64,000 nucleotides of DNA, from contig OX337237.1 in assembly GCA_946965045.2 (NCBI GenBank), positions 558,001-622,000 of the forward strand, given 5' to 3'. The position numbers and the translations under genes are program-made. How positions within the stretch are numbered: position 1 is the stretch's first letter; the number at the start of each line of letters is the position of its first letter. Source of the stretch: Epithemia pelagica. Taxonomy: Eukaryota; Protista; Bacillariophyta. The notes beneath the pieces were generated by a model that saw only the letters and a list, made by a program, of their open reading frames with translations, was not told the origin of the DNA and did not search any database. Positions 39,501 to 64,000 of the stretch are shown piece after piece.

Positions 39501-41298
39501 TGATTCGATTTCCAGAGCATCCAGAGCACCAAGGTACTTGGCCATACGAATAGCACCCAACAATTTCGTTGACAAAGGCCGACTCCACACAAATCTTGGC
39601 AATATTTAATTTCTTGTGATCATCCACATAGCAGCGGAGTCCTGACAGACAGGCAAAAGCAGCATATGAACTCAACGAACAGCTTAGGATTCGGAGCCCA
39701 TAGCAAAAGCGATCAACAATACTCAGCCCAACGATGCTGATACTGTCCTCAGCACTCCACAAGGCCTCTTCACGAGCTCACTGAGCTAAGAGCATGACAT
39801 AGAGCAAGCCACCGACTCGTCATAAGCTGTCATTTACGGCCAAGACAAGGACAGCGTCAATGAAAGGGTTACTCTGGTGGGGATTCACCCTGCCCCCACA
39901 AGAGATGGCAAAAGTTCATTCAAACGACTCTCATAACATATGACAACCACGTCGCCATAATATTGATGGTAAACCAACTCTCATGGACTTCACCAGCACA
40001 AAATAGACCAATCTTGCCACCATTATAATTTGATGGCCGTTGTACGCAACAACAGAAAAGATATACCAAATATCAAGTTTGACTGCTTCTTTCATTTCGG
40101 AGCAATGTCAAAAATTCATGGCAGAAGAAACGGGCATGATCGTCGCCATAAAACAACACCAGGCTCATGATCTTATACTCAGCATGCAAACTGCCCAACG
40201 AGCAGAATCTTGTCTTCAATTCTTGTTGTCTGTCTATCTCATAGACGGTGCATGATACAGGCACCCAATCCACGTTCAAAGCAGCAGAATCATAGGGAAT
40301 TGCCATCCATGGCACGATCAAACTCAGAACGCTGTGTGATCTCAAGATGCAACAATCGATTGCGATTGCAGTACAAGCACAATGCGCTCTCTGCTTGCAG
40401 CGCACAGCCAATCATGGAGTAAATCATCCATGCTCAGCCCACAGAAGGGGCTTACTTACGAAAGGAGACAAAGAGTCCCCTGTCGTTGTCGACAGGCATT
40501 TGCTTACTGTCCAATTTCGTACCTCATTCATGGTACCTCTATAGCGCATACTCTTCTGCGCTTTCGTAGTGTGCGACTTCCTTTGTCAGCACCGAGTTTT
40601 CTTTGTGACTTCTGGTGTGTATGTCCGAATCATCATCGAGTTGAGCAACGGGCTCGCAATGAAGCACCGTCTGTCGAGTGATCTACATGCGGCATGTTCA
40701 ACTTGGAACTCCAACAATGTAGAAAAACGGCGTACGTCGATTAACAACCGAACGCATCCGCAGTGGGCACTCTTTCATATTCCATACCTCCCAACGGGAA
40801 GAGGCTCGGCGCGTCCGCCGTTTGCCCGAATATGTGTGCAGCAGCAGACCACACATTCCTCCTCACCACTCATCCCCCGCTGTAGGACGAGCATTACGAC
40901 TGAGGAGTTCTTGGGCGAATGAACCTTCCATGAGGACTCATCCAGATATTCTCGCGACCTTCCCAGGCTGGATATTTCGACCTTCCCAGGCCTCAACTCA
41001 TGGTGAACGCTCAGAGACTTGGGTCTGATAAACCAAATTACGACACCGATACTGGATGAAAAATCGTTCAAATCAAAGAAGTGTCTACTTTATCTACCAA
41101 CAATAGGAGCGACTGGCGAGGGGCTAACCCTAACCCTAACTCGCCGACAGATAGCTATATCGCCCAAATTCCGCCCACTATCATGACCGTAATTTGATCC
41201 GATTACCGAAAAGCAGAAGGAGTTTCAATGCTGCCTCATTTCTTCTCACAATTTTTGCACAGCGACAAACTAAAACGCACATCCACAAAAACAAAATC

Positions 41299-41976
41299 AT
41301 GAAGATCTCCATCGCCCTCATTGTATCCTTCTTCTTGTCCTCCGTCTTGATCGTCAATGCCACCTATCTTCGTCAATCTTCCGGTGTGGACCAGAAGACA
41401 CGTGTGCTAGACGACGAAGACGACGATGACGATGATGATGACAACAGCAACAACCAAGAAAGTGAAAACACGATCATCAAGAAATGCCTGGATCAAATTT
41501 ACGCATTTCGTTTCGACTATTGCGACGCCTTGCGTGGTAAAATCACTCTCGATGAGTGGAGCGAAAGGGCCGAGAACTACATTCATCCTGGAATTGTGAC
41601 ATCGGGTTTTGCCGGTCCTGGTGAAATCGTGTATTGGATTGGCAGAGAAAACTTTTTGCACAATGAGACGGGGCTCATTCCAATGCTTCAGAATACTGCC
41701 GGTGGCAGCTTTACGAGCTGCATTGTTGTCTTTTCGGGCACGATCCGGGTGGATTATTTTCCTGACGACAACAAGATCATCCTCACCACACCCAATATCA
41801 AGGCTGTTAGTTCACCTACTTCACCAGGACAAGGTAACTTGCCAGGCGCTAGCAACAAGTTTATGGAATATGAGGAAGATAATTACACTTTCGAAAAAGT
41901 GGAAGATGATTGGCTCCTCTCTACGTATGACGATCCCAACACGGTTCTCTCTCTAAAGGCCAACTCCTATCCATAA
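41299..41976 (+). CDS. Secreted protein with acidic linker and probable NTF2/SnoaL-like domain
   Basis: Hydrophobic signal peptide MKISIALIVSFFLSSVLIVNA, then YLR...RVL and poly-Asp. The fold guess rests on the helix-then-strands pattern ending YTFEKVEDDWLL. Confidence 0.7.
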   Translation: MKISIALIVSFFLSSVLIVNATYLRQSSGVDQKTRVLDDEDDDDDDDDNSNNQESENTIIKKCLDQIYAFRFDYCDALRGKITLDEWSERAENYIHPGIVTSGFAGPGEIVYWIGRENFLHNETGLIPMLQNTAGGSFTSCIVVFSGTIRVDYFPDDNKIILTTPNIKAVSSPTSPGQGNLPGASNKFMEYEEDNYTFEKVEDDWLLSTYDDPNTVLSLKANSYP

Positions 41977-43043
41977 AGCGAGAAAAGAAGAGAGCAATTG
42001 GAGGGTAGAGTCAACCTTCACATTGACTACCCTTATCAACAACAATTTTGATGTGATACAAAACTCTGTATATTTAATCTTATGATTCATAATAATCTGT
42101 TTTCTGATTATGACCTACTGTCTGGTATTACAAGTAGCTGGATGCCACTTCACAACGATACCCTGACCTCCACTCTTGACTAGGCCGGTCGAAGCATTCG
42201 AGGTGGTTTGAGCAGCATCCCTGGGAGACTCTGGATCATGAGATGCGACATCTCAACCCGTGCAACACAACAACGATGGGGGTAGTAAAAAAAATCAGAA
42301 AACATAATATATTCAAAGTTGTGGGAACACGGCCATGGAAGTGGGGATTGAGGGTCGCCCTGCGCTAGCCCAGCAGATGGCAGAGAATTCTGAAAGGGTC
42401 AACAGATGGACAGAGAATTCTGAAAGGGACTCTTTTGAAACCGACAGACGCCGCCCCTGATTTTTCGCCCCCTTTCAGAAGCGGGGATGTCACAGAAAAG
42501 AGGCCCAGATTCTTTTGTTGGGCATAAGTATGTGGTATCCATCCATTGTTGATGCGACAATTGCCAGGCATCGTTGTAACAAGCTCCAGCCACCAACAGC
42601 AGCAGCACCAACAGGCAAGTGTATCAGAAAGAAGAGAGAAAAAGGAAGACTGAGTCTTTGTCAAACCGAAGGAGCGAGAGGCACATTTTTGAAAAATAAC
42701 GTCGCACTTGTTTTGCCCCTCGGTTCGGCTTCTGGCCTCTTCCATCCATTCGATACCCAGGCATTTCTTGATTTGAGTGTGACATTGACCACGAGGAGGA
42801 ACCACCGTCTTGGACGGCACTGACAAGAGTCTCGGGAGACATTTCGACGACCAACCAAACAAAACTACGTATGCTACGTCTTCCTCTTATCGATTGATTT
42901 CTGGTCTCTCTACCTAGTTTGACGCGAGTGATTGATTGTTGATTAGATTGAACAAATTATTGGATAACAACAAGTCGGGCCTCAATCTTGACCGGGGAAA
43001 ACAACAGAGGGCAAAATTGGTATTACCAACGACGGAACGAACC

Positions 43044-44727
43044 ATGTCGTCCCAACAACGACAAGGACCCTCGGCTGGTACCGAATGGGAAGCGCTGTTA
43101 CCATCCAGCCAGGCCGATACTCTTGCAAACAACAATGCTAGTAGCAACCACCAACCGACAACTGGTCCACCCCGACGACCGCTTCCGCCCCAACGATTGG
43201 AATCGTCGTCTCCGGTTCCTTCGACACGTGCCATGGGAAGTTTGTTCAAAACCTTGTACAGTGGTCGGTGGTTTCCCGGTGCATGGGATATTCGCGATGT
43301 GCCCCATCCCAACAACCTGAATGAGCATCATCATGACGACAATGATGGAGACATGGAACATTCGTCTCATCGTCGTCGGTCGAGCAAAAGTCGTAGGCAA
43401 CGTACGACTATAACCGGTTCTCCTGGTCCTTCCTCGTCAGCATCCTTGTCGAGTACGATTCGTATTCGACAAGGTCGGAGTTGGCGGCGGCGCATTTTTT
43501 TGCTCGTGACGGAACCGGATACCAGTATTTTGTCGGCCCTCTTTTTTGTCGCACTTATTGTGGCAATCATGGTCATGAATGGACTCATGATGTTGCAAAC
43601 CATGCAGTTCTTGCAATATACACCCACGACATGTGACTTTTGTCAAGTCGAATGGCCTCAACAACATCAATATGACATCAACTCTGTGGATGATGGTGTA
43701 TCGTCCTCGTGGATTCGGGATGCATCCTCCAATATTCCAGCCACTGATGATGCTACAGACAACAGACACATGGGAATTCCTTGCATCTGTCCTCCCACAC
43801 CCTATCCATGGACGGAGCGTGTTTTGAAATATTTGGTCTACTTCTTTTCGATTGAATGGATTCTTCGAGTTATCTGCTATTCCCCCGCTCCCCATGAACA
43901 AGAAGATCAAGATACCCCCCTAGGTCGGCGTCGTTCTCATCAGGATCGTCGCCGTCCTTTGGCGCCCCGCCTTGGCCAATTTCTCAATTATTTGTTTTCG
44001 TGGCAACAGATTTTGGATTTTTGGGCCACCTTTCCCTATTACATGGAGTTTTTGGGCAATTCCAATGGTCTCATGAGTTTGCGCCTGTTGCGCTTGTTTC
44101 GTGTCTTTCAATTGGTTCGATTGGGAACCTACAATGCCACCCTCACCACCCTTTTGACGGTTCTGCAGCAAGCCACATTGCATTTGAAATTGCTCGTTCT
44201 CATCTTGTTGTTTGGTGCCGCACTCTTTGGAAGTGTCATTTATTGGTTGGAACGAGGCGACTGGAAGTATTGGCCCGAAACAGAGTCCTTTCAGTTTATA
44301 CGAACCAACGAACATGGACAAGAAGAAGTTTCACCCTTTACCTCGATTCCAGCCACCTTTTATTGGTTCATGGTGACGGCCACGACGGTAGGTTATGGTG
44401 ACGTCTATCCCACCTCCAATGTCGGGCGATGGGTTGGCGTCATGGCCATGTTGTCCGGAGTCTTGGTCGTGGCCTTTCCCGTAGGTGTCTTTTCCGATTT
44501 GTGGTCCAAGGAACTAACAAAGAAGGGAGCCTGGCAATCCGATAATTACGAGGACGATGAGGACGACGATGGCGACGGAGATAATGAAGACAATGGGGAT
44601 GATGGTGAGAACAGACGATTGGTCGCTCCTATTACCAATATACCTTCCAACAGATATCGAACCATGGAGGAAGAACGCAAAGCGGCTCAGAGCGTTCATT
44701 CAAACACGGCTCCTACGCTACCTCAGG

Positions 44728-44759
<32 letters not shown>

Positions 44760-44930
44760 GGAACTTGGTTGGACTCCTTTTTCTCGGGGACGGCACAATC
44801 GGCAGGTGTGATCCTGTCACGGGCCAATGTAGACACGATCATGGCTCATTTGCAATCCATACAGGAATCGCAACGCGTTATTCAACATATACTGGCACAA
44901 GCCCAAACTCAAGCAACCCAACACGAGTAA
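43044..44930 (+). CDS. Voltage-gated potassium channel (6TM, Kv-like)
   Basis: S4 LRLLRLFRVFQLVRLG, pore SIPATFYWFMVTATTVGYGDVYP, S6 GVLVVAFPV; poly-Q C-terminus. First ATG at 43044. Confidence 0.95.
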
Positions 44931-45735
44931 TATGATATGGCTGTTCGGAGAGGAACGGATCTATAGTATAGAGAGAGCTGTTCCAAAGACGACCGATCCT
45001 CTTACCAGAGAGAGAGAGAGTCAACCAATTGGTTCGCAGACCCTTCACTTGCAAACACTCCGTCCACGTATATTCCAGTTGATCTGGGGTATTTTGTTGA
45101 GGTGGATTCTCTTGCTTTCTGATGTTGTTGCCTTTCCAGGATGGAACGGGTGATTCTTGGATACCGAAAAAAGACTTTTTTCTGTCAATACGAGCGGTTC
45201 TCGTGACAATCCAAACGCGTGTGTTTCCAAGACCACGACCACCCTCATTCAGAAACACATGACGTCACTATCCCGAAAATAGTAAGAAGCCCTTTTTGTT
45301 AAATAGCCTCCACCCCACATCACACCACCCTGTGTATCACGACCGACTTACCGTTGAATGCCATTTTTGGCCAATTGATTCTTATCGGAATCACGTTGCA
45401 AACCCAACGGACCATTCTTCATAGAGTCAAGATGGCCGCTCAATCGTTCCTACGCGAAAATCGGCCATTGAATCGGCTTTTTCGACCTCCCTTAGCACCG
45501 CCATCTATGCCCCACCAAAAAATGAGCAAATTTTCATTTTTTCAACACCGGCTTCCTCGCACATGAATATAAATTTTATACATCTCGTAATATTACATAA
45601 GGAATGGTCGCCCTTCAATCGTCGATGCCAAACCAATTTTTAGAATTTCACCTCTCGATGGATCGATCGATTGATGTGTCAATTCATCAAGTCTGTTGCC
45701 TTTGGTGACTAGATCTTATCTCTTCCTATTCAACC

Positions 45736-48700
45736 ATGACACGTACCCGTCGTTCCTCTGCGAAGCCCCCCGGTTCTCCTCGGAGCAAGATGCAGAATGT
45801 GTCACCCATTACCAAGAACCTACCAAAAAAGAAGAATCGCGTCCACTCCCCTTCAAAGAAGAAACAACGTCAACAACGTCGCTGCAACATGCAAGCTCCG
45901 TCCCCTAACCTTCAGACCCGGAGTAAGCGCAAGGAATCTGGAGTAAGCTATGCCATGAACATTGTCGAATCCACCCGGATTGCGAAGATTATTGCTGATT
46001 TCAAGGACGAAGAGAACAAACCATGTTCTTGTTTTGGTGCCGATCGTGAGGAACGATACAGAGACTATTTCTTCTGTCATCAATGCCTTCTTGCTGATCG
46101 TCAAGAACAGAACAAGCCTAACCTTTTCACCAATCGAAAATCTGAACGTGGATTGTTCAAATGTCAAGCAGAACACAAAAGCTTTATCCATCCCACGCAC
46201 AGATTGGAAATAATTGTTCCCAAGGAAAATCTGCGTCAAACAACCAAGGAAATAAAAGAAAAGGTTGCAGCCAAGGTAAAGAAACGAGAGGAAGCCAGAG
46301 GGTCCATGCAACCATCAACACAGCAACAGGCAACCAAACGTGTGATCCTAATTGACCCTGAAGACAACAAAACAAAACCAATGTCCCCCAAGGCTCGTAA
46401 GTACCACAAGAAATTTTTACATAAGACGAGTAAGGCTCAAATTGTAGGATTTAGTGGTTGCCCTCCTGCTGGAAGTACCAACAAAGAGACCCAAGTTCCC
46501 AACTCACCTGAAGCTTTCACCAAAGCAGATACTTTGTCCCTCAAAAAACCTCCCCCTCAAGATCCCAGGAGTCCACCAAAGAAACCGCTTCCTTGCATTT
46601 CAGAAACAAAAGAAACTGATATCGCTGTTGGATCCTGTGCCAATCCTTCTACTGCGAGTAACCAAGATCGAACTCTTTCGCCCCATCGAGCTGATTCTCC
46701 GTCCGTCCGTACGGAAGCTCCACCCCCCGTGCACAAGAGTCCACCGAAGACACCTCCACTTCCAGTACACGAAACAATGGTCACGTCCAATCGTTCACCA
46801 GCCAATAAAGAAACATCAACTATACCCGGTGTTATAGAAACTAATAAAACCTCTCAACCCGATTCTTCACCTGCCCTACCAGCCAATGACACTACCCAAG
46901 ATGCAACAGTGGAGTCTTCCGATGTCCATGAGGAGGAACAAGACGATAACGCTCAGGATGAAGGGCATACTGAGCGTAATCAAATTGGTCGACACATAGT
47001 ACAGAAGCTTACAGAAGCAGTACAGAAGTTACAAAATGAAACAAGTGTTCTCAAAGAACGTCTTCGTACCACCGAGAAGAAAGCCGAGAGGAAAAAAAGT
47101 CAAGTGAAGTACTGGAGGAAGCAGTGCGCGAGAAAGATTCCTCTCAAAATCCCCAAATCTGTTGGTCGTAAAGAAAATGCCATGACTCTAGCAGATCATG
47201 TACGTAACCTAGTCGAAGACAGTGTGTCAAGACTGTCCAATGACAGTCTCGGGTCTCAGACGCTGTTCAAGGAGTTGACTACGATGCTCCTTGATCCGTC
47301 ATTGCATGGTGGACAGAGTCTACAGTGTGCCTATGATGTATTTCGTAGCTACGTACGACAACATGTCTTCACTCCCTTTGAGATTCTACGCCAGATGGAT
47401 CTTCGGGGAGGTGGATTGAACTACAGCAACATTGAAGTACTCCGAAATGTAGAAACGCAAGGTCGTCCATGGCAGCGTACACTTCTGCCCAGTACATCTG
47501 TCCTTCAAGACTGTGCTAGACAGGTAGAGGAGTACGGACAGAACTTTTGTCCGTACCGAATGATTCGCGACAAGAAAGATGGTAGCGAGGGATTCGCGTT
47601 CCGTGCCGCAGATGTGATGGTCGCGATCTTGATGGCCGGGCAGGTACTCCAAGACGAAGCTCTACTGAGGCCTACTCATTTAGCACAGTCTATGGATGGG
47701 GCTTTATTTACAAACAATCTTGCGCACACCCTGGGGGGCTTGAAGTTTAATGACCAAGCGTCCGAGTTACGACAGTCACGAGACGGTGTCTTTCCTGTAC
47801 TCTGTGTTTGCTCTCGTGAATCGAAGGGCATTGTTCGTGGAATTTTCTATCGTATGATAAAGGAGATCGAAGAGGCAGCCCAGTTTGTTGTGCCCCGGCA
47901 TTTCGGAACAGAAATTATTGTCATCACCACCAATTGCGACATGAGTTTGGAATGGAAACTAGTGGCCCGAGGTGGCGCAGCAAGGCAAGTGACTTACCCT
48001 TGTGCTAAGTGTGCCGTCCGCAGTGGACAACTGCATATCCAAAGCCAGCCAACTCACTCATGTGTATGGTGCCAGGAGCTTGGACACCTTTCAAGGCCAA
48101 ATTGGGTCTGCCGACATCATCGCATCTGCACGAAGAACTTTATAGCTGAAGTCCGTAAGCAGGCCAACAGTCTCGAGAAGCACATCCCAACAAAATTGAG
48201 CAGTTTGGAGGAAACATGGATGGCATCCAATTTGACACACAGTGAAGACCCAAGGAACGATGTTACTCAACTTCAGAAAGGATCGACCAAGTCGATTCAT
48301 TTTGATCTGTCACGAGCATCACGTGAAGACAGGAAGACGTACTCTGAAAACCTCACGCATGACCTTGCGTTGAGGGACATGGATTTCACAGGCTCTCTGG
48401 AAGTTCGACAAAGCAGGCTCTTGGCTCAGCACATCAAGGAATGGACCTACTTTCGGGCAAGCCAAAGCCTTGCTCAGTTCGAGAATAGTCAGATCGACAG
48501 TGCTCTTGTCTTGGTTCTCGACATTGTCCCATGTATTCTCCACATGGAGAATCGTATGGGTCTCCTCTTCCTATCATTGATTCTTAAAATTGGTCTAGCC
48601 AACGTGAAAAGGAAAGGAATGTCGTGGATGTCATCTGCAGAGAAGAAAACAGAGAACCAGCGAATCGATGCATTCCGGAACAAAGTCAACAAAACAATGA

Positions 48701-49561
48701 ACACAAAGATGCTAGGAAGCGAAGACCAGCCAAGACAATGGGTTCTTCCATACGACAAAGAGAGCAAGTCCATTGCTATCATCTGTATGGACAATGTTCG
48801 CATTCGCAAGGTTGTGGCATCTTTTGACAGCCTCCTCCATGTATGTCTCACAAACAAGAACGAGATACAACGATGGAAAACATGTCTGTCACATTACAGA
48901 CAAGATTATGAGATCCTGTTGAGAAAAGAGAATCTGGATAACTCGACGATCTTTGAGTTTCAACGCCATATTGATCTATTCTTTGCTGACTGGGTTACTC
49001 TACACGGAGAGAACGGAGTAACAAATTATGCCCACATGCTGGGAAGTGGGCACATCATGGAGTTCCTCCTCCATTACAAGAATTTATCAGCCCACTCCCA
49101 GCAAGGTTGGGAGGGTACGTAGACAGGTTGTAGTGGATTTGTGAATGGATTGCCACTAACCACCCTTTGCAGCTTTCAATTCGTTGTTCAAACGATTTTA
49201 TTTTACCAGGACGCAACGAGGTGGGGCTACCAACAAAGGACTGGGCCAACAGACCAGGCTACAGCCTATCGCACGTTGGTTGCAAAGACGGTTAGTCTTC
49301 ATGACAGGACATTCTTTGGAGCAGATCCAAAAGTCAAACGAAACAATGACAGAGGAACAGAAACAGGCATTCACAAATTGGGTAAGGAAGGAGAAAGGCA
49401 CCTTGGAATATTGCATGCCTATTGGTAAGAAAGGGGAAGGAACCGCGTTTGATAGCAACGATGATTGGGATGTTGGTGTGCCAACAGAGAAGAAGGCCGA
49501 AGAAACCACACAGGAGCTTGACGACTCATTTTGGGAGCAGTCGTCTATGGAGAGCGAATAA
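45736..49561 (+). CDS. RAG1/Transib-like DDE transposase, 1255 aa; exons 45736-49114 and 49173-49561
   Basis: SMDG (Asp 47695), NCDM...YPCAKC (Asp 47938), PCILH, VTNYAHMLGSGH and SQQGWE (Glu 49111). A 58-bp GTACGT..CTAAC..CAG intron restores E-A-F-N-S-L-F-K-R-F, like RAG1 ESGNKLFRRF. No TIR pair found. Confidence 0.8.
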
Positions 49562-49598
49562 ATATGTAGTGCTTATATGTAACTGGAAGTTGTATTAT

Positions 49599-49958
49599 CT
49601 AAGAGTATTGAACAATGAGATCTTGTACCTTCTTGTAGTCCGTAGTGCGAACAACTCGTTGCGATTTCGGGTCACTGTCTTTGTCATACAACGTTCCAGC
49701 CAATACCTGAGAGGAAATTATGCGCTTTCGACTCTCACTGGACATGTAAACATGTACCACTTTGAATACTGTACCATCTTTCTCGTATATATCTCCAATG
49801 CATATGCCTTGGTATTCTGAGTCATCTGGCGGTGGTTGAGTGTGAGACAATACTTTCGTATGATTCAGCTTGTAGTTCCCCTCTAGGATGTTCTTCAAGT
49901 GCTCAGTAGGAGGCTCGTGTTGCAGTGACCCATTCCTGAGATTGCGATCCTTTTGCAA
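49599..49958 (-). CDS. Hypothetical protein or terminal exon convergent on the transposase
   Basis: 119-codon ORF with TTG start (frame open to about 50054); its stop lies 37 bp from the transposase stop. Confidence 0.35.
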   Translation of the reverse strand: MQKDRNLRNGSLQHEPPTEHLKNILEGNYKLNHTKVLSHTQPPPDDSEYQGICIGDIYEKDGTVFKVVHVYMSSESRKRIISSQVLAGTLYDKDSDPKSQRVVRTTDYKKVQDLIVQYS

Positions 49959-49960
49959 TT

Positions 49961-51196
49961 CTATGATGCGTTCACCAAACCTCGATCTACGGGTCTGTCG
50001 TCCTTGTGGTATTCCAACTGGAACAACAACGACGACGACGGACGGATATATGATCTATGCGGACTGTTTCTCGGCGCCTCCAAGCAAGGTGTGCATACGA
50101 TACGGGTTTGTACCGTTAGGGTTGTGTACACATGGAAGGATCCTCTTTTGCCTTGCGCTCTCGTTCGGCTCACTGTGTGGACGAACTCGAGACGTCGTTG
50201 GTCTGGAAAAGAGTCGTGGGAATCGACGACCACTTATCCGAATGTTTGCGGATCGACCAAACTGTAGATGGTGGATTTCGGGACGTGCTAGCAAGATTCT
50301 TTCAGCAAGGAGGTGGTCCTGAAAAGACGATCCGGAAAGCCAACCGACAGTTCACCAAGACACCATTGTTTCGTCGGCATGGGAGTTTGTCAAGAATTTC
50401 TCGTGCATGCACCATACTCCTATATCTATATTGTGGAAAGACCAGTTTCAGGACGATGGTTCCATCGTCTCTCGGTACAACCATCTCACGGATGGCACGA
50501 GTGATGGGGTCGAGGACGGCAGTTTGTCGTCTTCCGGATATGTTGTCATATTCCACTGTGGTACCACCATTGTTCCAGTTGAGCCTGGCGTGCCACAAAC
50601 GCAGACGATGGGCAACAGAGCAAAAGGGTTTTGGATGCTCTTGTCCGAGCCATTCGCTGTCGTCTGGCCATATCCAGCACTGGTCCTATATGTATTATTC
50701 AGAAGCAAAGTATCGGCAACCCATGGAACTATAGTTTGTTCTCGAGCAGGTTGTATCACCAAAGCAGATTCGCCAATGATCCAATGCTTCCTGTAGTAGC
50801 CGTCTCTTGGTAAGAAGGGAAGGAAGGCGTCCATTTTTCTCGGTCCTGAACTCCGAGTCCAAATTCTTGGAGCCCACGTCTCCCGTGGATGCCTTCCATA
50901 TAACGCGAACCACCCTACTACCAGAGTCGTTGTCGTTTGCCTCGTAGTGAAACATGTATTGATCCCAGAGTTGACACACTTGACCTTCTTCCCCGAGTTG
51001 CTCGAACGGTTGCAATACTCAATCAAAGTGCTGTTGTGGTTGTTGTCGCATGGTTGTTTATGTTGCGCACAGTGCGTTACCGTTTGTGTTCTGGATGTGG
51101 ATCAATCACCCCCACCTGTGCCGCGGGGGATGCCTCGTGGTCATTGTCGTCATTCTTCTTGTGGTTGCAGCAAGAGCAAGGCTCGTCCCGAACCAT
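49961..51196 (-). CDS. Probable multi-exon or disrupted hypothetical gene; exon structure unresolved
   Basis: ATG at 51196 after a host-like 5' UTR, GTAACG donor-like site, and several overlapping protein-like minus-strand ORFs (50695-51015, 50302-50598, 49961-50233). Confidence 0.3.
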
Positions 51197-52814: not shown

Positions 52815-52888
52815 TGGTTGTGTGCGTTGTTGTTGTTGCCAAAAAGATTCGCCAAACGCTGATTTCTCTTTTCCACAAGAAAGAGATT
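52815..52888. repeat. 74-bp direct repeat, second copy at 63681-63754
   Basis: TGGTTGTGTGCGTTGTTGTTGTTGCCAAAAAGATTCGCCAAACGCTGAT(T/C)TCTCTTTTCCACAAGAAAGAGATT; one mismatch. Confidence 0.92.
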
Positions 52889-53264: not shown

Positions 53265-54782
53265 ATGGTACCTCCGTCCGCCAATATGCTTCCGGACCAT
53301 ACAGTCGCCAATCATCATCATCCTCCTGGTGCGGCTGCTGCTCCCCTGTCCCCTCCCCCCAATCCATTGGCTGCCGCTTCGGAACCAGTGGATCATCCCA
53401 ATCCTCATAATAATCCAATTGCGACGGCATCATCTCCTCTGTTTCATGGCGGCAAACAACTCTTGTTGGCCCCTCCTCCGTCGCACTTGATGCTGGATGC
53501 CTCGTCTTCGTATCATAATCCTCATGCGGCGCACGACAGTGCTCCGTCCCCCTTGCCGGCCCAACATCACCACCAACACCATGCGGCACTTCACAATCAC
53601 TTGTCGGAAGCCGATATTCACGAGTTGCTCGGTGGTGTCTGGGATACCGAAACCACCACCCAGCAGCAACCGCCGGTTGCTCCTCCTTCCACGGCTGCAG
53701 TTGCTCCAGCCGCAGCAGCGTCCTTGCAGCATCCTGCAGCTGTTCCTACCACAACCACTACGACGGTATCCAACGACTCGACTGTCATTCCCGAAGACTG
53801 CAAAGTCTTGGCACGATCGGAACGCAAACGATCGCGAGAAAAACAACGTCGATCCGATGTCAATCGACAATTTTCCGAATTGATTCAAGTCTTGCGGCAA
53901 GTCGAAGCCAATAGTTTGGTGCATCAACAGCATCAACAAGAACAACAAGAACAACCCGAAGATGCGAATGGCACGGCTACGAGTACGAGCAATGGTGCTG
54001 CTGCTGCACCAACAACCGCAGCCACTACCAGTTCGTCCAGTAGTTTGACGGCCACGACAAGTAGTATTGCGACACCGTCCAATCGAGCCGATTTGATTGC
54101 GCGGACCATTCAAGTGTTGCAAAGTTTGGATCAGGAACGGACTCGGTCGCGACACGAAACCCGAACCCTTCAAACCAAGTTGAAGATGGCGCAAAAGGCT
54201 GGGGAAGAAACGGCGGCCAAGCTCAAGGAAGCCATGATGACACCTGTTTCGGCCGGATCCAATCGAATGCTCATGATGGTCCCCATGATTGTCGGTGGCG
54301 GAAATCATGCAAGTCCTCCTACGACGGCAGCGACAACGACTGGTACGACTCCCACACCGACAACCACCGCCAGTGACACGACGACGACTGGGACAGCGAC
54401 TGCTTCCACGGCGGCTCCTCCCACTGCTGCAGCGGCGGCCATGCCCATGATGCATCCCGGAATGATGATGCCCTTTGCGGCTCCCGAAGGAATGGCACAT
54501 CACCCCCACATGTCCACGGCCATGCCCTGGATGATGCCCCATCCGGCGGCATCGGCGGCTCCGTGGGGCATGATGCCCTTTGCGGCTCCACAAGCGACCA
54601 CCACGACCCCGCCGACCAACCCTGCTACGACCGCACCGGCTCCGGTCGGGAGCAGCACCACGGCCACCACGACGACGACGACGACGTCGACCACACCGTC
54701 GGCCGAAGGCAATGTCAAACCTCTGCCTCATGATGGCTCGGGTGGATCCTCCTCCTTGAGCAATTTGGCGCATTGTGCCTAA
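53265..54782 (+). CDS. bHLH transcription factor
   Basis: Basic region and helix 1 RKRSREKQRRSDVNRQFSEL, long Q/T/A loop, helix 2 NRADLIARTIQVL, then a coiled coil. Confidence 0.9.
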   Translation: MVPPSANMLPDHTVANHHHPPGAAAAPLSPPPNPLAAASEPVDHPNPHNNPIATASSPLFHGGKQLLLAPPPSHLMLDASSSYHNPHAAHDSAPSPLPAQHHHQHHAALHNHLSEADIHELLGGVWDTETTTQQQPPVAPPSTAAVAPAAAASLQHPAAVPTTTTTTVSNDSTVIPEDCKVLARSERKRSREKQRRSDVNRQFSELIQVLRQVEANSLVHQQHQQEQQEQPEDANGTATSTSNGAAAAPTTAATTSSSSSLTATTSSIATPSNRADLIARTIQVLQSLDQERTRSRHETRTLQTKLKMAQKAGEETAAKLKEAMMTPVSAGSNRMLMMVPMIVGGGNHASPPTTAATTTGTTPTPTTTASDTTTTGTATASTAAPPTAAAAAMPMMHPGMMMPFAAPEGMAHHPHMSTAMPWMMPHPAASAAPWGMMPFAAPQATTTTPPTNPATTAPAPVGSSTTATTTTTTTSTTPSAEGNVKPLPHDGSGGSSSLSNLAHCA

Positions 54783-56694
54783 TCGAGGGTGTCGTTGGAA
54801 GTCGGGACGTGAATGAGGAACTTTTTTGCTACAACAGCACCACAAGAACATCAATAGGGGACAACCACGAGGAGAAAAAGAACCAATTTTATTTTTTAAT
54901 ATATATTGCTACATAATTTGCATTTCTATCAAGAGTCTTCCAACATATCTCTTGTCTGTTGGTAGTCCTTCCCATCCTTCCATGTGTGTTTAACACACAA
55001 TGGATCCAAAGAGCAACAAGAGGCGAATGCGTAGTCCATCCCCAAAACCGGAAACATCCAGTATCCATCCGTATCATGTCGTCGTCCATGTCATTTGAGT
55101 TGGAATACGACAAGAACGACCGATCCGTAGATATCGAGATATGGTCCATTATACCACATTCCAAAGACCACCAACGCTCGCGATTGCTTTGTCAAGAGGG
55201 ACATAGTTCTTCCTACCAAGGATCTTCTGGTAGATTCGTTTGGGATCGTACAGGGGATTTTGCGGGTGCATCCCCAACTCAAGACGTTTTGGAACGTCCC
55301 AGTAATGTGTACGACGAACAAAAGAGAACTTTAATCTATGTTCTAGACTCCTTATCCCTCGGTATCAGTGTCCACTGCTTAGCTGTTTTTTGTCTGTGCC
55401 ACCTTCACAGGTTCCCAAGTGGACACAGCCAGCATTTTATGTTTTTCGTCTGTCTGTCTACCCAATAAAATTCCTCAGGGTTGGAGCAAGGCCAGCGTGC
55501 ATGTGACAGTTGACGGTTGGTGGTTGTCCTCTGGTCACCACGATTCAAATTTTTTGGGCAACCCTCCCGTCCTCGTCTGTCACAAAACACCAAAAACCGA
55601 GCCAAATGCTTGACCATGACGTGAGGTGAGAACAATGGATGCAACATGCTGGGCTGAACCTGAACTGCTTCTCACTTCTCACTACTGTGGCTTATTTCTA
55701 ATCTTCTTGTTTCTTTTTCTTTCTTCTCACTCATCACTGCTGCAATCTTTCCTCTTGTTCATGCATGATCCTTTGGCTTGTCTCTTGTTGAACGAGTAGA
55801 CTAGGAACAAGCCGCTTGATGTCAACTGGAGTATCTTACCCGTCTCATTTGTTGATGTAGGAGTAATTGTTTTGTTGTTTGATTGTTGGTTGGTTGCTTT
55901 CATGTCTTCTGTAGGATAGATGATTCACTATCGTCATAGATCGTAGCATCATCTCATTTCTCAATGACCGAACACTTTGTTGTTTTTGCTTCAAATAGAT
56001 GGGAAGCCCTCTTGCTCTTGCCACACCCTACTTTCCATGTCTATCAGTTCATAGAGTCAAAAGTTGTAGCTGTAGCGTGTGAGAGCTGCTTGTGTTCATG
56101 GTGAAACTGAGAGTCATTGCCATGCTCAAAACAGAAAAGAGATCTGCAACGAATTCAGAATGCACTGAACTCTACGAATGAATAGCACTTGAGTTCTATT
56201 TCTACTCCTAGTATATAAAGAAAACAATGTCTGCAGTCTGTTTATGTATCGAATGAAAGTTATCAAAAATCCGTCATTTCGACATGTAGAATGGCACGTA
56301 ATGAGCTACCCAGAGACACAACAGATGATCGCCTCTCTTCCCATGAGCAGAGCAAACAAAAGTGACAAGTGTCAGTGATCAGTGAGCATGAGCTATGTAA
56401 TTGTCATGGCAATTGGCAACGGATCACACTCACCTGGAATGCCATTCGTACGATGTGCTTCGGCAACAAGAGAAAAGAATTGTGTGCTTGTCATTATGTT
56501 GTCCACGCACGGCCGCTTGCTGGGCATGCGTCTGTTTCAAACTGTGAAAACTCCAGCTGGGTATGCGTGCCAATTTGCCATTTGATCATTTCTATTTGTC
56601 TCAAAAGCAAAAAATGATGTCTGTGTCCACCTGGGAACCTAAAATGATGGCACAGACAAAAAACAGCTAAGCAGTGGACACTGATACCGAGGGA

Positions 56695-57060
56695 TAAGTA
56701 AATTCTCTTTGCGTACGTACTATACTTACATACTTATATCCACTCTGTATATTATTCAGTACTTTACTTCGATATTTCTAGTCAGACTCAAACTAGCTCT
56801 ATACTTTACTTTCAAACTCTATACTAATATGTATAATAGATAATACTTTACTTCGTGACTTAGTAAGTTTCCCACAAACAAGCACGTAGTACTTCCCCCA
56901 CCCACAAATCACTTCTTCTCACCAGTTACTTTACTCCTCTACTTAAACTACCATTCCAATTCTTCCCCTACTTTACTTTCGTACTATGGATAGAACAAAA
57001 ACCACAGCCCACAATTACTTTCCTAGCACCGAAGTAGTCTTACTTTGTTACTTCAGTACA
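56695..57060. repeat. Left subterminal TACTT(T) motif array
   Basis: About nine TACTTT copies by hand count, several as TACTTTACTT. Confidence 0.75.
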
Positions 57061-57176
57061 CCCCACACTGTTATGTCCGACTGACATGCTGTATCTGCTT
57101 CACTCCCAGAGCGCAGCACATTCACCTCTGCCGCTTCTGCCTCTCTGATATACTCTCTCCCCACAATCATCAATAC

Positions 57177-58987
57177 ATGATGAATGAATTTATCGAACAC
57201 AACACAATTCAATTCAAATCTAAATGCCGGCCCATGTACGTTCTCCACTCGAGTAAACCTTTCTTTACTCTCATGGACGATTTCATCAACGGCACAGAGC
57301 AACCTTCCATGACACCCAACGCACTCCGCTATGCTGTTCATCGACAAACCATATCGTGGCTCATCCGGCACGATGGCTTCATCTTCTACAAAGAATGGAA
57401 CACATCGCAATCACAGTCTCATCCCTGCCTACTCCAACTATTCCATTTCTGGGAACAAGTACAACTGATTGTGTGCATCATCGTGCGGACATTAAAAGAT
57501 GGGTTTCCCAAACAGCATCCAGTCGACTCATTCCAACATTTTTTCATCCCTAACGAATCAAACGACTCCAACCGGCTGATACTTTCCATAAGTTGTGACC
57601 CTTTCTTCACTGTAATGGAGAATTCCAAATTCGAGCAATGCATGGAATTCACCAAGCAAATGTGCATACAAGGCCCACCCATTCCTACCGAAACCATCAT
57701 CTCATCATGGTTTATCCGCACTGGTTGTGCCATCTATTGCAAACCATGCGCACAAGATTTCATCGTTGATTACTACGTTGCGGATTCTCATACGGAAGAA
57801 ACGGCAACACAACAGACGCTCTTTCCAGTGCACCTGCGGCCCTACTTGTCATTATTGCAGCAACTCTTTGCTAGTCAATACAAACCAAACGTCTCAAACA
57901 GTCCTACATTACCCACTCCTACCAACAACCAATCGTCATCGACCAATTCCTTGCCGGAAGACAGTGGAAAGAAGGAGATTTCTTTACCCCATGAGATCCA
58001 AAACCAGTCTACACCCAAAAAGAACCAGTCGAAAGGTTCACCAAAGAAATCTCCCACAGGTACACACTCATACTCAACAAGACACCGGACTTCAACAGTA
58101 GCCAAATTGCTTCAATCCGCATCTCGTTCCAAACTGCAAATATCATATCCTGACCGGAGACACCAACCTGGGAAACCTCCATTATTGATGACTCCACCGA
58201 AATGTGGACTTCATATCCGGATGCTTGAGGAGAGCATTGTGGAGAAAAGACTTTCCATGCTTTCCCAGATGATTGCTTTCCACGAGGAACTCCAAGAAAA
58301 AGGATTCTTCGCACCTCGGGACAAATGGACAAGTTGGCTTGACTGTCAACACGACCCTAGTGCTGATCGACCTTTCATGATTTTAATGACAATTTGCATG
58401 AGCAGCAGTACGTCGGATCTTCAACTGAGCTCAATCATGCCACGGCTGTTCGCTTTTTGCCTCACTTCAGCAATGGCCGTCATAGAAATCGCGCAACAAT
58501 ATGGAATGGATGCCCTTTGTTCCATCTTCTCAGAGTCCGGTCGATACTATCAAAACACTGAGAGAATCGTTAATGCGGCAGACTACTTCTGTCAACGGCA
58601 TCATGGGAAAATTCCAAACGACATAACAATCTACGAGTTGACTACGTTGTATGGCATTGGGTACAAAACCGCCTGCATAGTGATCAAAACGGCGTTTCAA
58701 AGAGTGGATAGTATACCGTCCGACATTCATGTCATCAGGTGGAGTGAGCATCTTGGATGGGTCCCAAAAGGTGTCACTGGTTGCCATGTTCCAAAGTTCT
58801 CGAATCTTGGCTGCCCCCTGAAACTTGGCATGCCATCAATCCCCTCTTTGGCGCGTTCGGACAACATTCCGTATCTTATGAATCACGAACAGCATTCCTA
58901 TCGCAGTTGCGCCAGACGGACAGAGTTGATTTCTCTATGCGCAAAACAATCGAGTCCATGATCTACAAATATCAAGTATTCTCCTAA
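57177..58987 (+). CDS. Endonuclease III (NTH)-like HhH-GPD DNA glycosylase with unknown N-terminal domain; single-base frameshift near 58775-58795
   Basis: FMILMTICMSSSTSD, HhH motif LYGIGYKTA (Lys 58665), PSDIHV.RW..HLGW (Asp 58722). The expected continuation VLESWLPPETWHAINPLFGAFGQ is in the alternative ORF 58757-58987. First ATG at 57177. Confidence 0.82.
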
Positions 58988-59089
58988 ACTCTTAATCGCT
59001 CTTTGTGGTAAATTCATAAATTCCAATAGTAAAATCTTCCTCTGTAAATCTCATGTTTCACACTCATCTTCTCTTTTTGGTTCGTTCTT

Positions 59090-62000
59090 TTATTCTTCGG
59101 CATCGTCTTCGTCTTCTTCTTCTTCTTCATCGCGTTCGTCATCGTCGTTTTCATCATCGTTGTCATCGTCATCACCATCCGAACGGGTTGATTCTTCTTC
59201 TTCATCGTCACACACGTCGTCATCTCCTTGGTCTTGGTTTTCATCATCGCCATCGTCATCCTCTTCTTCTGTATTCAGAGCACTCTCGTCTTTTTCCAAG
59301 TCTCTGTCCACTGACATCTCGTCATTCTCCTCTGTGTCCACCTGAGACCGCTTGGTTGTCCTGTCCTTTAGCAGTTTCTTGTTGTTTTTGCGAATGCGAG
59401 GAGATTGTCGAATGGGTACGGTTTTGTTTCTCTTCTTTGCCGGAGATGTGGGAGCACTGGATGGACTAGGTTTACGTTTCCATCCCAATGTGGATTGGAC
59501 CGGTGCATCCTTCTTGGCATTTTTCCCTTTTGGCTTTGTATTATCGGTCTTTGTATTGTCGGTATTGTCGGGTTTCGTAACTTTGATGACCTGCACGTCA
59601 GTATCATTGCCATCATCTCTGGTTTTGTCATCTCCGGTTTTGTCTTCTCCGTCATTGTCTTCCGGCATGGTAACGAGTTCTTCTAGACGAGGATCGTCGT
59701 CCGTCTCGTCCCACAATTCCTTGTCCAGTACATGGTCAATGATCCCATCACTATCTTCGTCTGGATCCTTCGGCATAGGCAATGAGGAGGCTACCGAATC
59801 AAATTTGTATTTGTCATCAATCTCGACATATGCAACCCGGTTGAAGTCAATTGGAGTTGTAGTTTCTCCATGAGTCGACAACTTGTAGACCACGTTGTCC
59901 ATTGCACTATCCATTGCCACCGCTTCAGTTCCATCCTTGTCATCTTCATCGTCAGGCAACGGAGGTACAACCCCAGCATCTTTGGGTACCTCCTCAGGTG
60001 GTGGGACCGGAATGGTTGTTGATTCATTCTGTCCGTTGTCTTCTTCCGCTGGCTTTTTGTATCCAACCACGGGATAGTACGTGCCCCCAACTGCCGGGTC
60101 TTCCAAGACATTGCTGTTGACTTTGTATGAGTGGGAATACTGGCGGAAGCCCGTAGTTGCATCCTGGACGGCCGAGGTTTGAAACTTTTTCCGTTGGTCT
60201 TGAAGACTCAATTCGACTGCCGCATCCATTGCCGCATCCTCGGGGTGCACAATCCGTTTGTCGTATGACTTACTGGTGCCAATGCCCTTTTCAATGTTCT
60301 TCTCGTTCGTTGCAATCTCCTCCAAGACTTTTCTGTTAATGTACTCCATAGTACGCATTTCATTTGTTTTTTTTTCATGTTGCCCATTAACTTATTCTGG
60401 AGCATCCAACTCCCGATAGAGAAGATTCTCTCTTGGAAGGCATTGGTGGCCGGTTTGGCCAACCAGATGATCGCCGACGGGAACACATATTCCCAATTGC
60501 TGGAGTGCACGTTCCACCAACCCATCAGATCGAAGTGTTGGCCTACTTCAAGGTAGTTGCGATTGTGGCAATGGCGCGAGAATGTTTCCTTAGCTTCGAC
60601 AGACCAGTCGTCATATTCGTCCAGGAACTTGGGTGTTGGGTACTGCTTGATAACCTGCTCCCAGTTATTGTCAATTTGGGAACGGCAGTGTCGCAGGAAA
60701 TCATCGTACGAATCATTGCAGGCTTTGCGGAGTGCCTCTTCGATTTCTTTTTCTTTTGCTGCATTCGATGCCCTTCCTGTTAGATGGAGCATAGCTTGGT
60801 TCTTCAAATCGCTGGAGCGTCGAATTCGTTCAAACACATCGATTGCTTTGTATTTCAGTGTTGCTGAATTGCCCGATGAAGAAGCGGCGGTTTCCGTTGA
60901 GTTTCCTTGTTTCTTGTCGCCCTGTTGTCCTTGTTTCGCCATTGCAGCTCCGATAGTTGAAACACGTGCATTTATGTGGAGATCAACCATGTCTTGGACA
61001 AAAATACGACGCCCTTCCTTCACTGTATCCAAGTCGTAAACTCCAAAACTCACAAACATGTCAGCATAGACACTGGCCAACAGAGGATTTGCACATACAG
61101 CCTTTAGGGCATCAGGGTCGCGGTTGAATAGGTAGTGCCTGTATTCTTGAATTATGCGTCGGATAAGAAGTCGGGCACCGGGTTCTAGCTCCTTGTATGG
61201 GATTAGTCGCCGCATCTCTTCTAGGTCATCCATTGTGCAACTTGCATCCCAAAAAATATCACTGTCATCGGAAGAGATAGGCAAAACCCCAACTCCGCAG
61301 TCAGGCTCTTCCATACGCATTCTCTGGGCATGATAGAAGGCCGTATAAATCTCAAGTAAAGATGCAGAGTTGGCTCCTGGGTCTTCTGTTTGGAGTTTCA
61401 TGGAGACCCGCTTCAAATTTGTTAGGATGCCTTCGTATTGTGCCATCAACTTCCAGTCGTCTTCCTCAGGATAGTGTTCCTTGAATTGAGGGTTGCTTCG
61501 GACTGCAGTCTTTACGTACAGATCCATCATCTTTTTGTTGCGTAGAAGTGCCTGCTTAGATAAGACACAACCACCAACTCGGGTGTCGTTGGGGAGGGGA
61601 ATGACAACAACCCGTCCGCCAAGTTTCTTGATGCCCTCCTTGAACTTTCTCCAACGGTGAGGGGCTTTCTTGGCAGTGAGCCATGAAGCAAATTTCTCGA
61701 AAATCATCCAGCAATCGCAAAAGAGCTTATTACTTTCCATTAAGATATGGTTGTTGTATCGTTCGACAAGACCCGTCGCGTGTTTCAGGATCAATTCGGC
61801 CTTGTGCATATCGCACTTACCGGCCTTGTTGGGGTTGCCGATAATGTACTTCCCCACCAAAACAGCCGCGGAGGTATTGTCATTCACGGCCGCGCAGAGA
61901 TCTTTGGAGGTGAGACCAACACTCAAGAGGAGATGGTCCGTCAAATTCGCAACATCTGTTGCCGCGTGACCATGGCATTCGGCAAGGCCGATGGGGATCC

Positions 62001-63129
62001 GGTAGATTGTGCAATTTTGCGGATCTGTAAACATGATGGTGACACCGAGCACATCATGGTCACGGGCTTGCCAAATATCGTGGCAGCAAGTGACAAATGG
62101 AACGTCTTGGGAACAGAGACGGTTGTATTCAGCTCTGGCCTTGCGGACGAGAGAGGCAACAACAAGGAAAAAGTTCTGATACGACGAGATCCGAATCTTC
62201 GTGATCTGCCGCCGACTCATGATCTCAACACGGCTGCCCTTCAGCAAGCCGGCATTTTCCATGGCAAACTGGATCATTTTGCGAAACTGAGGTTTCTCGA
62301 CTGTGATTGCTGGAAGGCAACAGTCGTTCACGAACCGGTATATCAGCGTTTGGAATTCGGATTGAGTTGCTGAATTTGTTGGGTGGTCCTTCCGGCAGTG
62401 AGACATAGTAGATTGCTTATAAGGAGAAACCTTCCTCTCCTGGTCGGCATCAATGTCGAACTCTTTATGCTTCTTGTCACAGTGCTGTGAAATGTTGGAT
62501 GGGCGGAGGGAACCACAAAGAACAACTGATTCTGAAAGTGTCTTCTTATCATCTCGGAAACAGATGGGGCAAATGATACATTTCCGACAGACTTCTCCAA
62601 AACGCTCTTTTGAAAGTTCAGCGTGTTTGGCTGGAGGGGCATCGAGTGGGACAGGGTTTTCCCCAACCTTGACAAAGGCTTTGAGTTGGTTGATAATTTT
62701 GCGCATGCCAGCAAACTCGTAATAATTATGCTCCACTCCAATGATGTTGTTCTCAAGCAATGCCCAATCGATGTGTACTGCAAAATCCCACCACTTGGAA
62801 TGATTCGGAAAGGACAAGAAATAGGGATGAACAGTGTCAAGAAGAGGAACCATCTCTTTCTCGTTCTTAGCGGCAGTGTCGACAGCTCCTTCGATTTGTG
62901 CAAAGTTAGCGTCGACTTTTGCTTGTTGTTTTTTCAATGCCGAGGGTTTGCGTTGTAAGGGAGATTTCTTCTTCGGATTTGTAGAGGGCGGAGGTTTCTT
63001 CTTGGATGACGGAGTCTTGTTGGATTTAGGAGTCTTTTTCTTCGGTTTGGGAGTTCGCTTTTTAGATGATGAAGAAGGTAAAGGGGCTTCATCCCCTTTT
63101 GATGGAGATTCTCCCGGATCGTCCGGCAT
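59090..63129 (-). CDS. hAT transposase with long acidic C-terminal extension; frameshift in a T9 run at 60367-60375
   Basis: BED-like CPIC...QHCDKKH, TCCHDIW, VNDNTS, CDMH, NDTRVGG, and dimerisation motif PATNAFQERIFS. Correcting the homopolymer joins KKK-TNEMRTMEYIN to ORF 59090-60358. Confidence 0.9.
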
Positions 63130-63339
63130 GGTGAAACAATGAACAGTATCTCAAGAATAACAAAGGTATGTATGAAACTTGTTTGGTTGCTGTGTGTGAG
63201 AGGAGGAGAGGAGGAGGCGGTGAAACGATACCATGCTGTTACCAGAGGTGCTTATCCTCATCTGTTGCACGTGTGAGATTGGATTAATGGGGGAAAAGAA
63301 TGCGTGGGAAGATCGTGGAAAGTAGAAAGGGAGTGAGAT

Positions 63340-63675
63340 GAGGATTTACTTTCTACTGAATGGTGGATAATACTTGACAGTGGTGCTTGACTTTCGTACT
63401 TTGTGTTGCCAGCATGGGTGGTGGTGAGTTACTATGTTACTTATAGTCAGTCGTCAGCGATGGTGGTGCTTTACTTGATTACTTTATGACGTGGTGTAAA
63501 GTGGGGGGTACTTTAATTATGTACTTTGCGATAACGCAGTAGGAGAGGAGTAATGTACTTCGTGTAGTAAAGTAATGATCGAGTGAGATGGTTACTTTAC
63601 TTCGGGAAGTAGAAGTAAGGTAAAGTATAGTATAAAAGTATGGTACTTTGCAAAAAAGGGTACTTTTTACTTCAC
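63340..63675. repeat. Right subterminal TACTT(T) motif array
   Basis: About eight TACTTT plus three AAAGTA copies by hand count. Confidence 0.75.
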
Positions 63676-64000
63676 AACTCTGGTTGTGTGCGTTGTTGTT
63701 GTTGCCAAAAAGATTCGCCAAACGCTGATCTCTCTTTTCCACAAGAAAGAGATTTTCATTTTCGTGTTTTTGCGTTTTTGATGAAAATTTCTGGTCAAAA
63801 TGAAAATGATCACGCCGGCCTTCTGTGTCACCCTTTTGAAATCTTGTGAGCAGACGTGCGCGCTTTGACCGTTGGTCTTCTCGTTCGTCCTCACTTTCCC
63901 CTGCCAATCCACACAATTTTTTCTCGTCTTCTTCTCTTCTCCCTCTTTCTAATGGACAATGGACATGCACCATGACCATGCATTCTCTATCATGCATACC

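Follow-up and report, generated by a model that had tools for sequence, protein, structure and literature searches.

A hAT transposon family present in the diatom Epithemia pelagica carries an endonuclease III-like DNA glycosylase gene that co-diverges with its transposase gene

Factors known to be carried by transposons include anti-silencing proteins such as VANC, histone methyltransferases and TET/JBP dioxygenases. VANC of the plant VANDAL elements is a transposon-encoded protein that lifts silencing from its own family and is not an enzyme acting on DNA bases; DEMETER (DME) and ROS1, also of plants, are HhH-GPD enzymes, with a catalytic Lys and Asp, that remove 5-methylcytosine (5mC). To our knowledge, classical hAT transposons encode a transposase only. 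Previously, fungal DNA transposons (Kyakuja/Dileera/Zisupton, hAT7 and others) have been reported to carry TET/JBP dioxygenases, which were proposed to counter methylation silencing (PMC12730594). The present study concerns a stretch of 64,000 nucleotides of Epithemia pelagica (contig OX337237.1, positions 558,001 to 622,000), called the window throughout, in which a DNA glycosylase gene of the endonuclease III type converges on a hAT transposase gene. Our comparison with related insertions shows that the glycosylase is part of the mobile unit, that it has diverged together with the transposase, and that it is under purifying selection as strong as that on the transposase. No description of a hAT or other transposon with a DNA glycosylase as a selected gene was found in full-text literature searches, in agreement with a first, sequence-only reading of the locus, which knew of no hAT family with such cargo.

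The family shares with the hAT superfamily (Ac, hobo, Hermes, Tol2) 8-bp target-site duplications (TSDs) fitting nTnnnnAn, short terminal inverted repeats (TIRs) that start with CAG, short subterminal repeat arrays, and a transposase with a hAT C-terminal dimerisation domain. The TIRs stand at both ends in the siblings of the window copy and at the right end only in the window copy itself. Presumably, the TIR and the AAGTA-type repeats of the family also resemble those of Tol2. It differs from the superfamily in its second, convergent gene for a DNA glycosylase, and in an unusually long transposase (1250-1365 aa) with an acidic tail.

A search with the HhH region of the glycosylase yielded 16 further clusters at 53-72% identity, most of them in the ENA assembly ERZ21939226, presumably that of the genome to which the window belongs, and the others on short JGI and Logan contigs. 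The gene is multi-copy: clustering at 90% identity gives at least 17 clusters, and one of these has 16 members. The sequence-only reading had asked for other copies with both genes inside TIRs and 8-bp TSDs, and eight were found: in eight sibling insertions of one assembly (L001, L003, L004, L005, L006, L007, L014 and L015), TIRs (CAGRGTTG...) and perfect 8-bp TSDs enclose both genes. Specifically, one and the same glycosylase protein (P0007) is encoded at two loci, L005 and L006. Over exactly 6,799 bp their DNA shows 99.96% identity; this shared block opens with CAGAGTTGTGAA, closes with CAGGGTTGTGAA in reverse complement, and has on its flanks a perfect 8-bp duplication that differs between the loci (TTGTTCAC and ATTCAGGC). 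Since copies so nearly identical stand at two loci, we infer that the family transposase is catalytically competent. The nine target 8-mers (those of the eight siblings and the one to the right of the window copy) fit nTnnnnAn, position 2 being T in 8 of them and position 7 being A in 7.

The convergent pair was observed in L001, L003 to L008, L011, L012, L014 and L015. Every large-contig locus that was fetched, those interrupted by copia elements excepted, has the glycosylase on the plus strand, a spacer of 50-150 bp and a convergent gene for a hAT transposase of 1250-1365 aa, and intact siblings measure 6.8-7.1 kb. The subterminal repeat motif varies from one subfamily to another. The two genes are also found together in lineages whose transposase identity has fallen to 35-38% (38% for L012) and on contigs from four other samples, namely a JGI metagenome and Logan assemblies of three other runs. 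P0009 lies on contigs of the JGI metagenome and of two SRA runs; the JGI contig has the convergent hAT transposase gene, and one SRA contig shows the beginning of a convergent ORF. L011 shows the pair in a fourth sample.

The two genes have also diverged in step. The glycosylase tree was ((L008,L011),((L005,L007),((L003,L004),(L001,L002,window)))), and the transposase tree recovered (window,L001) and (L003,L004) with L005 and L007 outside, so that the two agree wherever both are resolved. This congruence test used the well-behaved transposase rows only; with full-length rows, L008 and L011 fell on very long branches because of low-complexity tails and a partial row. Path lengths in the two trees and ratios of non-synonymous to synonymous divergence (dN/dS) between young paralogous copies were as follows.

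Path length, window to L001: glycosylase 1.06; transposase 1.14.
Path length, window to L003: glycosylase 2.05; transposase 2.14.
Path length, window to L004: glycosylase 2.17; transposase 2.23.
Path length, window to L007: glycosylase 2.93; transposase 3.04.
dN/dS, L001 against L014: glycosylase 0.40 (7 synonymous, 10 non-synonymous differences); transposase 0.37.
dN/dS, L003 against L015: glycosylase 0.23 (11 synonymous, 9 non-synonymous); transposase 0.29.
dN/dS, pooled: glycosylase 0.30 (18 synonymous, 19 non-synonymous; P = 3e-4); transposase not pooled.

Every sibling copy of the glycosylase gene is one intact ORF (~590 codons), across more than 2 substitutions per site. Among three young clusters, the catalytic third of the protein holds only 2 of the 32 variable residues (P = 1e-4). 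Furthermore, the non-coding subterminal regions are 99.4-99.6% identical in the L003/L015 and L001/L014 pairs, against a dS of 1.8-2.7% in both genes; termini better conserved than synonymous sites fit a cis-acting role. We hold the anatomy of the family and the selection result with high confidence.

In the window, the glycosylase gene and its surroundings read as follows.

57180..58987, plus strand: glycosylase gene (~603 codons); the ORF runs from 57045 with the annotated start at 57180, and in the assembly its frame is shifted by the loss of 1 nt near 58780.
57180..57890, plus strand: conserved N-terminal domain of the glycosylase, with an internal duplication of a strand-helix-helix-strand unit (alignments; AF2 model with a predicted local distance difference test score, pLDDT, of 79).
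58317..58900, plus strand: HhH-GPD (endonuclease III/NTHL1-like) catalytic domain; Lys codon 58665-58667 (GIGYKTA), Asp codon 58722-58724 (PSDIH).
58988..59089, no strand: spacer of 102 bp between the convergent stop codons (glycosylase stop 58985-58987 in the corrected frame, transposase stop 59090-59092).

Thus, the convergent arrangement at about 100 bp and the retained catalytic Lys and Asp, both noted in the sequence-only reading, were borne out. The endonuclease III motifs sit in the last third of the ~600-aa window protein. Profile comparison of the catalytic domain matched human NTHL1 (7rds, E 4.6e-22), Geobacillus EndoIII (1.5e-16) and E. coli EndoIII (1.2e-11), with Lys and Asp aligned. 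In the AlphaFold model, the C-terminal domain has a pLDDT mostly at or above 90, and the best Foldseek matches of the model were NTHL1 (target-normalised TM-score, TMt, 0.70), EndoIII and MutY. The window piece of the glycosylase gave by itself an E value of 0.021 against Pfam, and family profiles were needed for detection. Across the family, the motifs G[IV]GYKTA and P[SA]D[IV]HV are kept in 16 of 16 clusters, the catalytic Asp lying ~19 residues downstream of the Lys.

With Endonuclease III/NTH1 (NTHL1) the transposon enzyme has in common the fold, the HhH motif with its nucleophilic Lys and the catalytic Asp, NTHL1 (7rds/7rdt) and bacterial EndoIII being the best matches. Unlike these enzymes, it is transposon-encoded in many copies, has ~380 extra N-terminal residues (among them a new folded domain and, in the linker, a conserved basic motif) and lacks the [4Fe-4S] Cys cluster. 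The four-Cys motif (Cys-X6-Cys-X2-Cys-X5-Cys) was found in 0 of 16 clusters; the tail after the GQ motif has 0-1 Cys, none in the window copy, and the predicted model places two helices where the cluster loop would be. Among NCBIfam models, TIGR01083 nth ranked first with 67-75 bits (E 1e-18 to 1e-21). The glycosylase is Nth-derived, yet it is not an Nth equivalog, because these scores stand far below the cut-off of 211.7. It also differs from DEMETER/ROS1: neither a DME-type split glycosylase domain nor the DME-specific C-terminal domains were found, HhH-GPD being the sole Pfam domain detected, the Fe-S cluster is absent, and the nearest relative is NTHL1.

The region ahead of the catalytic domain had been described at first as ~450 residues of unknown N-terminal and disordered sequence. 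This has to be revised, since only ~380 aa precede the HhH-GPD domain, and the first ~235 of them form a folded, conserved domain (pLDDT 79) of two strand-helix-helix-strand repeats with an invariant Trp in each. No match to this domain was obtained with Foldseek against the PDB, a VIA-align wide search, or ESM Atlas fold and feature searches; the structure and feature searches gave noise (best Z 4.5, TM at most 0.3, feature score at most 0.90). A disordered linker with the conserved basic motif HSYSTRxR...SRSK..I.Y..RH.PG joins the two domains.

The window copy itself is in a different state from its siblings. The features of its extent and termini are these.

56699..63682, no strand: hAT-derived DNA of the window copy, left-truncated (TIR gone) and with an intact right terminus (exact right TIR); its left limit is the end of the adjoining high-copy element at 56693-56698.
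56718..57060, plus strand: left subterminal repeat array of TACTTT/TACTTTAC units, some of them 42 bp apart.
63340..63670, no strand: right subterminal repeat array of TACTTT/AAAGTA units in both orientations.
63671..63682, minus strand: right TIR CAGAGTTGTGAA, an exact match to the family TIR over 12 nt.
63683..63690, plus strand: probable right target-site duplication GTTGTGTG, which has no partner at the left end.

Nine copies of TACTTTAC occur in the 64-kb window against 0.76 expected, a number reached in 0 of 100 shuffles, and 8 of the 9 lie within 56760-56976 and 63567-63627. Similarly, the 7-mer TAAAGTA has 10 occurrences in the terminal 800 bp and 0 internally. The arrays that the sequence-only reading saw around both genes are therefore present at both ends, with 8 of the 9 copies, but the matching termini are absent. 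A pattern search of the window with up to 2 mismatches found no left TIR of the hAT, neither a left TIR nor a left TSD emerged when the right terminus was aligned locally to 54700-57180, and 54700-56800 holds no second copy of GTTGTGTG and no TIR-like sequence. The left subterminal region aligns only weakly with the right end of the copy. These comparisons suggest that roughly the outer 10-40 bp of the left terminus are missing.

The span first assigned to the element, 56687-63682, accordingly holds at its right end, where the perfect 12-nt TIR runs to 63682; its left end belongs to a neighbour.

55351..56698, no strand: neighbouring, unrelated high-copy element of 1348 bp with 96-bp terminal inverted repeats (~90% matching), abutting the truncated hAT left end.

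Position 56687 (CCGAGGGATAAG) is the outer end of the 96-bp inverted repeat that pairs with 55351-55446. Contigs of three runs of the same organism (X1-X3) were placed on 56500-62400; they diverge by 1-1.5% from the window and therefore represent another haplotype or strain. Contig depth was 35,000-51,000 at 56500-56696, against ~160-200 in most later bins, and many contigs part from the window at 56693-56695. The excess depth and this divergence of contigs identify 55351-56698 as a separate high-copy element, similar to a miniature inverted-repeat transposable element (MITE). Furthermore, in the unique contig of X1-X3, GTTCTAGACTCCTTAT-ATACTA is followed by the sequence from 56694 onwards; the MITE body is missing, so that window positions 55350 and 56699 are contiguous; in that haplotype the element is replaced by CTTAT-ATACTA-ATAAG. 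At this left junction, a hAT TIR is absent from both haplotypes. The MITE-like element has a CpG observed/expected ratio of 0.52 and no evident TSD, and the DNA just beyond both its ends is itself weakly inverted-repeated.

Both genes of the window copy are frameshifted, once each, in the assembly. The glycosylase, compared with 16 family members, leaves its frame after ...GVTGCHVPK, and the conserved LESWLPPETW...FGAFGQ continues in another frame. In the X1-X3 contigs, one extra base at 58779/58780 restores ...GVTALPCSKVLESW..., so the glycosylase frameshift is specific to the assembled haplotype or is a consensus error. The transposase gene is composed as follows.

59090..63129, minus strand: hAT transposase gene (~1345 codons, long acidic C-terminal tail), in two overlapping ORFs, 63129-60208 (973 aa) and 60358-59090 (422 aa).
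60367..60375, minus strand: A9 homopolymer at which the transposase frame breaks, the conserved frame downstream being offset by one base.
60397..60582, minus strand: hAT C-terminal dimerisation region (PF05699 at 21.2 bits, cut-off 21.4; weak match to Hermes transposase residues 455-509).

The PF05699 score stays just under the cut-off in the window copy because the frameshift clips the domain; in the sibling transposases, which are single ORFs of 1255-1365 aa, it reaches 27-32 bits. Alignment to Hermes beyond the C-terminal region of the transposase was not obtained. X1 and X2 contigs spanning 59869-61672 show no indel at the A9 run, and the transposase frameshift is therefore common to the second haplotype. 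These contigs have an extra 14-nt deletion at 60887 inside the transposase ORF, besides the A9 frameshift, while the glycosylase frame is intact there.

With the left TIR and TSD gone, the transposase frame broken in two haplotypes and that of the glycosylase in the assembled one, we read the window copy as an old, immobilised relic that is unable to move by itself. A search with its transposase found 68% identity for the nearest listed protein and no near-identical sibling. The copy illustrates how an element dies, by terminal erosion, homopolymer frameshifts and neighbouring insertions. The claim of a hAT transposon with glycosylase cargo therefore stands for the family, by virtue of the eight sibling insertions, and not for the window copy taken alone, which lacks the left TIR and TSD and has both genes frameshifted.

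Some further observations concern the surroundings of the window copy and the structure of its siblings. A 74-bp direct duplication (52815-52888 and 63681-63754, 98.6% identity) has its right copy starting exactly at the hAT right terminus and containing the putative TSD GTTGTGTG. Its left copy resembles an unoccupied target site and is intergenic, between a minus-strand ORF (ATG near 52752) and an ORF of basic helix-loop-helix type. The duplication may be the record of a former insertion site or of an aberrant transposition or repair event; with a former insertion site, flank transduction and a macrotransposon under consideration, no TIR-like pseudo-end was found at either of its boundaries. 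Between the left 74-mer and the hAT lies a 505-aa ORF (53265-54782, plus strand), low in complexity and rich in Ala, Thr and Pro, in which the stretch ERKRSREKQRRSDVNRQFSELIQVL resembles a basic helix-loop-helix; it presumably encodes a transcription factor of the host. Elsewhere in the window there are 772-bp direct repeats (9036-9807 and 13699-14470, 99.6% identity) resembling a pair of long terminal repeats, and large segmental repeats, 95-99% identical, between 17-23 kb and 23.5-34 kb (17041-34090). Among the siblings, L001 (2204-13542) is 11.3 kb long with its outer TIRs and TSD CTCACCAA intact; nested inside it is a gene for a protein with a transposase domain of piggyBac type (PF13843, 2739-4916), and a stretch that takes in the 5′ part of the glycosylase gene is duplicated internally (5398-5807 = 7001-7410). 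Genes of copia-type (RVT_2) retrotransposons lie in or beside L002 (9764-15451), L012 (1-4350), L013 (9031-12826) and L014 (1-1588), and in L002 and L013 they stand in place of the expected partner gene.

Taken as a whole, the region of the two genes is one old, immobilised copy of a diversified diatom hAT family. The autonomous unit of this family (~6.8-7.1 kb) consists, in order, of a left TIR, ~0.5 kb of subfamily-specific subterminal repeats, the glycosylase gene, a spacer of ~50-150 bp, the convergent transposase gene, subterminal repeats and a right TIR. Judging from its sequence, the glycosylase would be an active bifunctional glycosylase/apurinic-apyrimidinic (AP) lyase working for the element. 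Its likeliest task may be the removal, from the element's own DNA, of a base that causes silencing or mutation (5mC, or the deamination or oxidation products of 5mC), and the N-terminal domain may direct it there. The precedents of DEMETER/ROS1 and VANC make such a role chemically and biologically possible. The explanation in its entirety, with a decayed copy, the family anatomy and a glycosylase acting for its element, we regard as evenly poised between right and wrong.

The anti-silencing or anti-mutation role by itself is proposed by analogy with the TET/JBP-bearing fungal transposons (PMC12730594) and with DME/ROS1 chemistry, and we put it forward tentatively, at somewhat less than an even chance. 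As in the fungal elements, a DNA-base-modifying enzyme is the conserved second gene of DNA transposons, a hAT lineage included, and in the glycosylase-hAT siblings, as in the TET/JBP class, an autonomous DNA transposon encloses the enzyme gene within its TIRs and TSDs, and the gene is kept from copy to copy. The differences are that the fungal enzyme is a dioxygenase and the present one a base-excision glycosylase, unlike every case in PMC12730594, that the host kingdom is another, and that TET genes hop between transposon superfamilies whereas the glycosylase co-diverges with a single hAT lineage. That this lineage recruited and remodelled a clusterless, Nth-derived enzyme with a new targeting domain, which erases cytosine methylation or repairs methylation-driven mutations on its own copies, is possible, though we think it rather doubtful.

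Several observations weigh against a role of this kind or against the wider explanation. The catalytic domain groups with NTHL1/EndoIII, which are oxidised-pyrimidine enzymes, and not with DEMETER/ROS1, and with the Fe-S loop lost the substrate cannot be predicted. The CpG observed/expected ratio of the elements (0.76-0.85) lies between those of the flanks (0.78-0.98) and of copia (0.68-0.71), giving no clear sign of protection from methylation-driven decay; this ratio did not discriminate between the proposed roles. Between the haplotypes of the window copy, the glycosylase has 7 synonymous and 12 non-synonymous differences, and the resulting dN/dS of ~0.47 is indistinguishable from relaxed selection (binomial P ~0.09, by our estimate). 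Finally, the transposase locus L013 has no glycosylase within 5 kb, though a copia insertion interrupts that side.

The main rival to base removal for anti-silencing is that the glycosylase/AP-lyase serves the chemistry of transposition, or its repair, and not epigenetics. It could nick or process donor or target DNA, clean damaged or hairpinned ends, or provoke a gap repair that recopies the element and so raises its copy number. The nearest relatives of the enzyme are indeed the repair enzymes NTHL1 and EndoIII, its lyase Lys is retained, and the constant gene order, orientation and short spacer in all lineages examined agree with such a service, as does selection equal to that on the transposase, which is expected of a factor required at each transposition. 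However, it is established that the hATs Hermes, Ac and Tol2 move with their transposase alone and that no known step of hAT chemistry needs base excision, and no sequence link was seen between the enzyme and the element ends. We consider this alternative unlikely, though a serious contender.

The second protein could also be mainly a DNA-binding or recruiting accessory, comparable to the Myb-like second protein encoded by PIF/Harbinger elements, its N-terminal domain binding the subfamily-specific repeats and its catalysis being secondary or lost. A conserved N-terminal domain with an internal duplication and no recognised fold is compatible with this, and a subterminal motif that is specific to each subfamily would suit a co-evolving recognition. 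The invariance of the catalytic Lys, Asp and surrounding pocket motifs in all 16 clusters speaks against this reading, however, as does a catalytic domain that is the most constrained part among young copies (2 of 32 variable sites), and the N-terminal domain shows no recognisable DNA-binding fold. An accessory of this sort is, in our judgement, improbable.

Host gene fragments do get captured by DNA transposons, and a fragment of the host NTH1 captured once might be carried as a neutral passenger without benefit, in line with the selection that looks relaxed between the haplotypes of the decayed window copy. Such a passenger is strongly disfavoured by the dN/dS of 0.30 (P = 3e-4) between transposed copies, by ~590-codon ORFs that stay intact across more than 2 substitutions per site, and by a gene that has co-diverged with the transposase and was found in every lineage sampled. 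The scenario that the sequence-only reading had set against itself, a single-copy host NTH1 beside a hAT whose true left TIR lies between the genes, has in its favour that the window shows no left TIR beyond the glycosylase, but it is refuted by a 102-bp spacer that holds no TIR, by the many copies of the gene and by the absence of the Fe-S cluster of canonical NTH1, and it is excluded for the family because TIRs and perfect TSDs enclose both genes in the eight related insertions.

If base removal from the element's own DNA is indeed its role, this would be the first case of a mobile element that encodes its own anti-silencing system based on a glycosylase. An enzyme that edits bases on element DNA would be a new weapon in the conflict between transposon and host, and a naturally occurring case of an Nth-type enzyme that is clusterless and retargeted. 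It would also offer for study a compact glycosylase with a possibly sequence-directing domain. The near-identical, active-looking copies L005 and L006 make this role directly testable.

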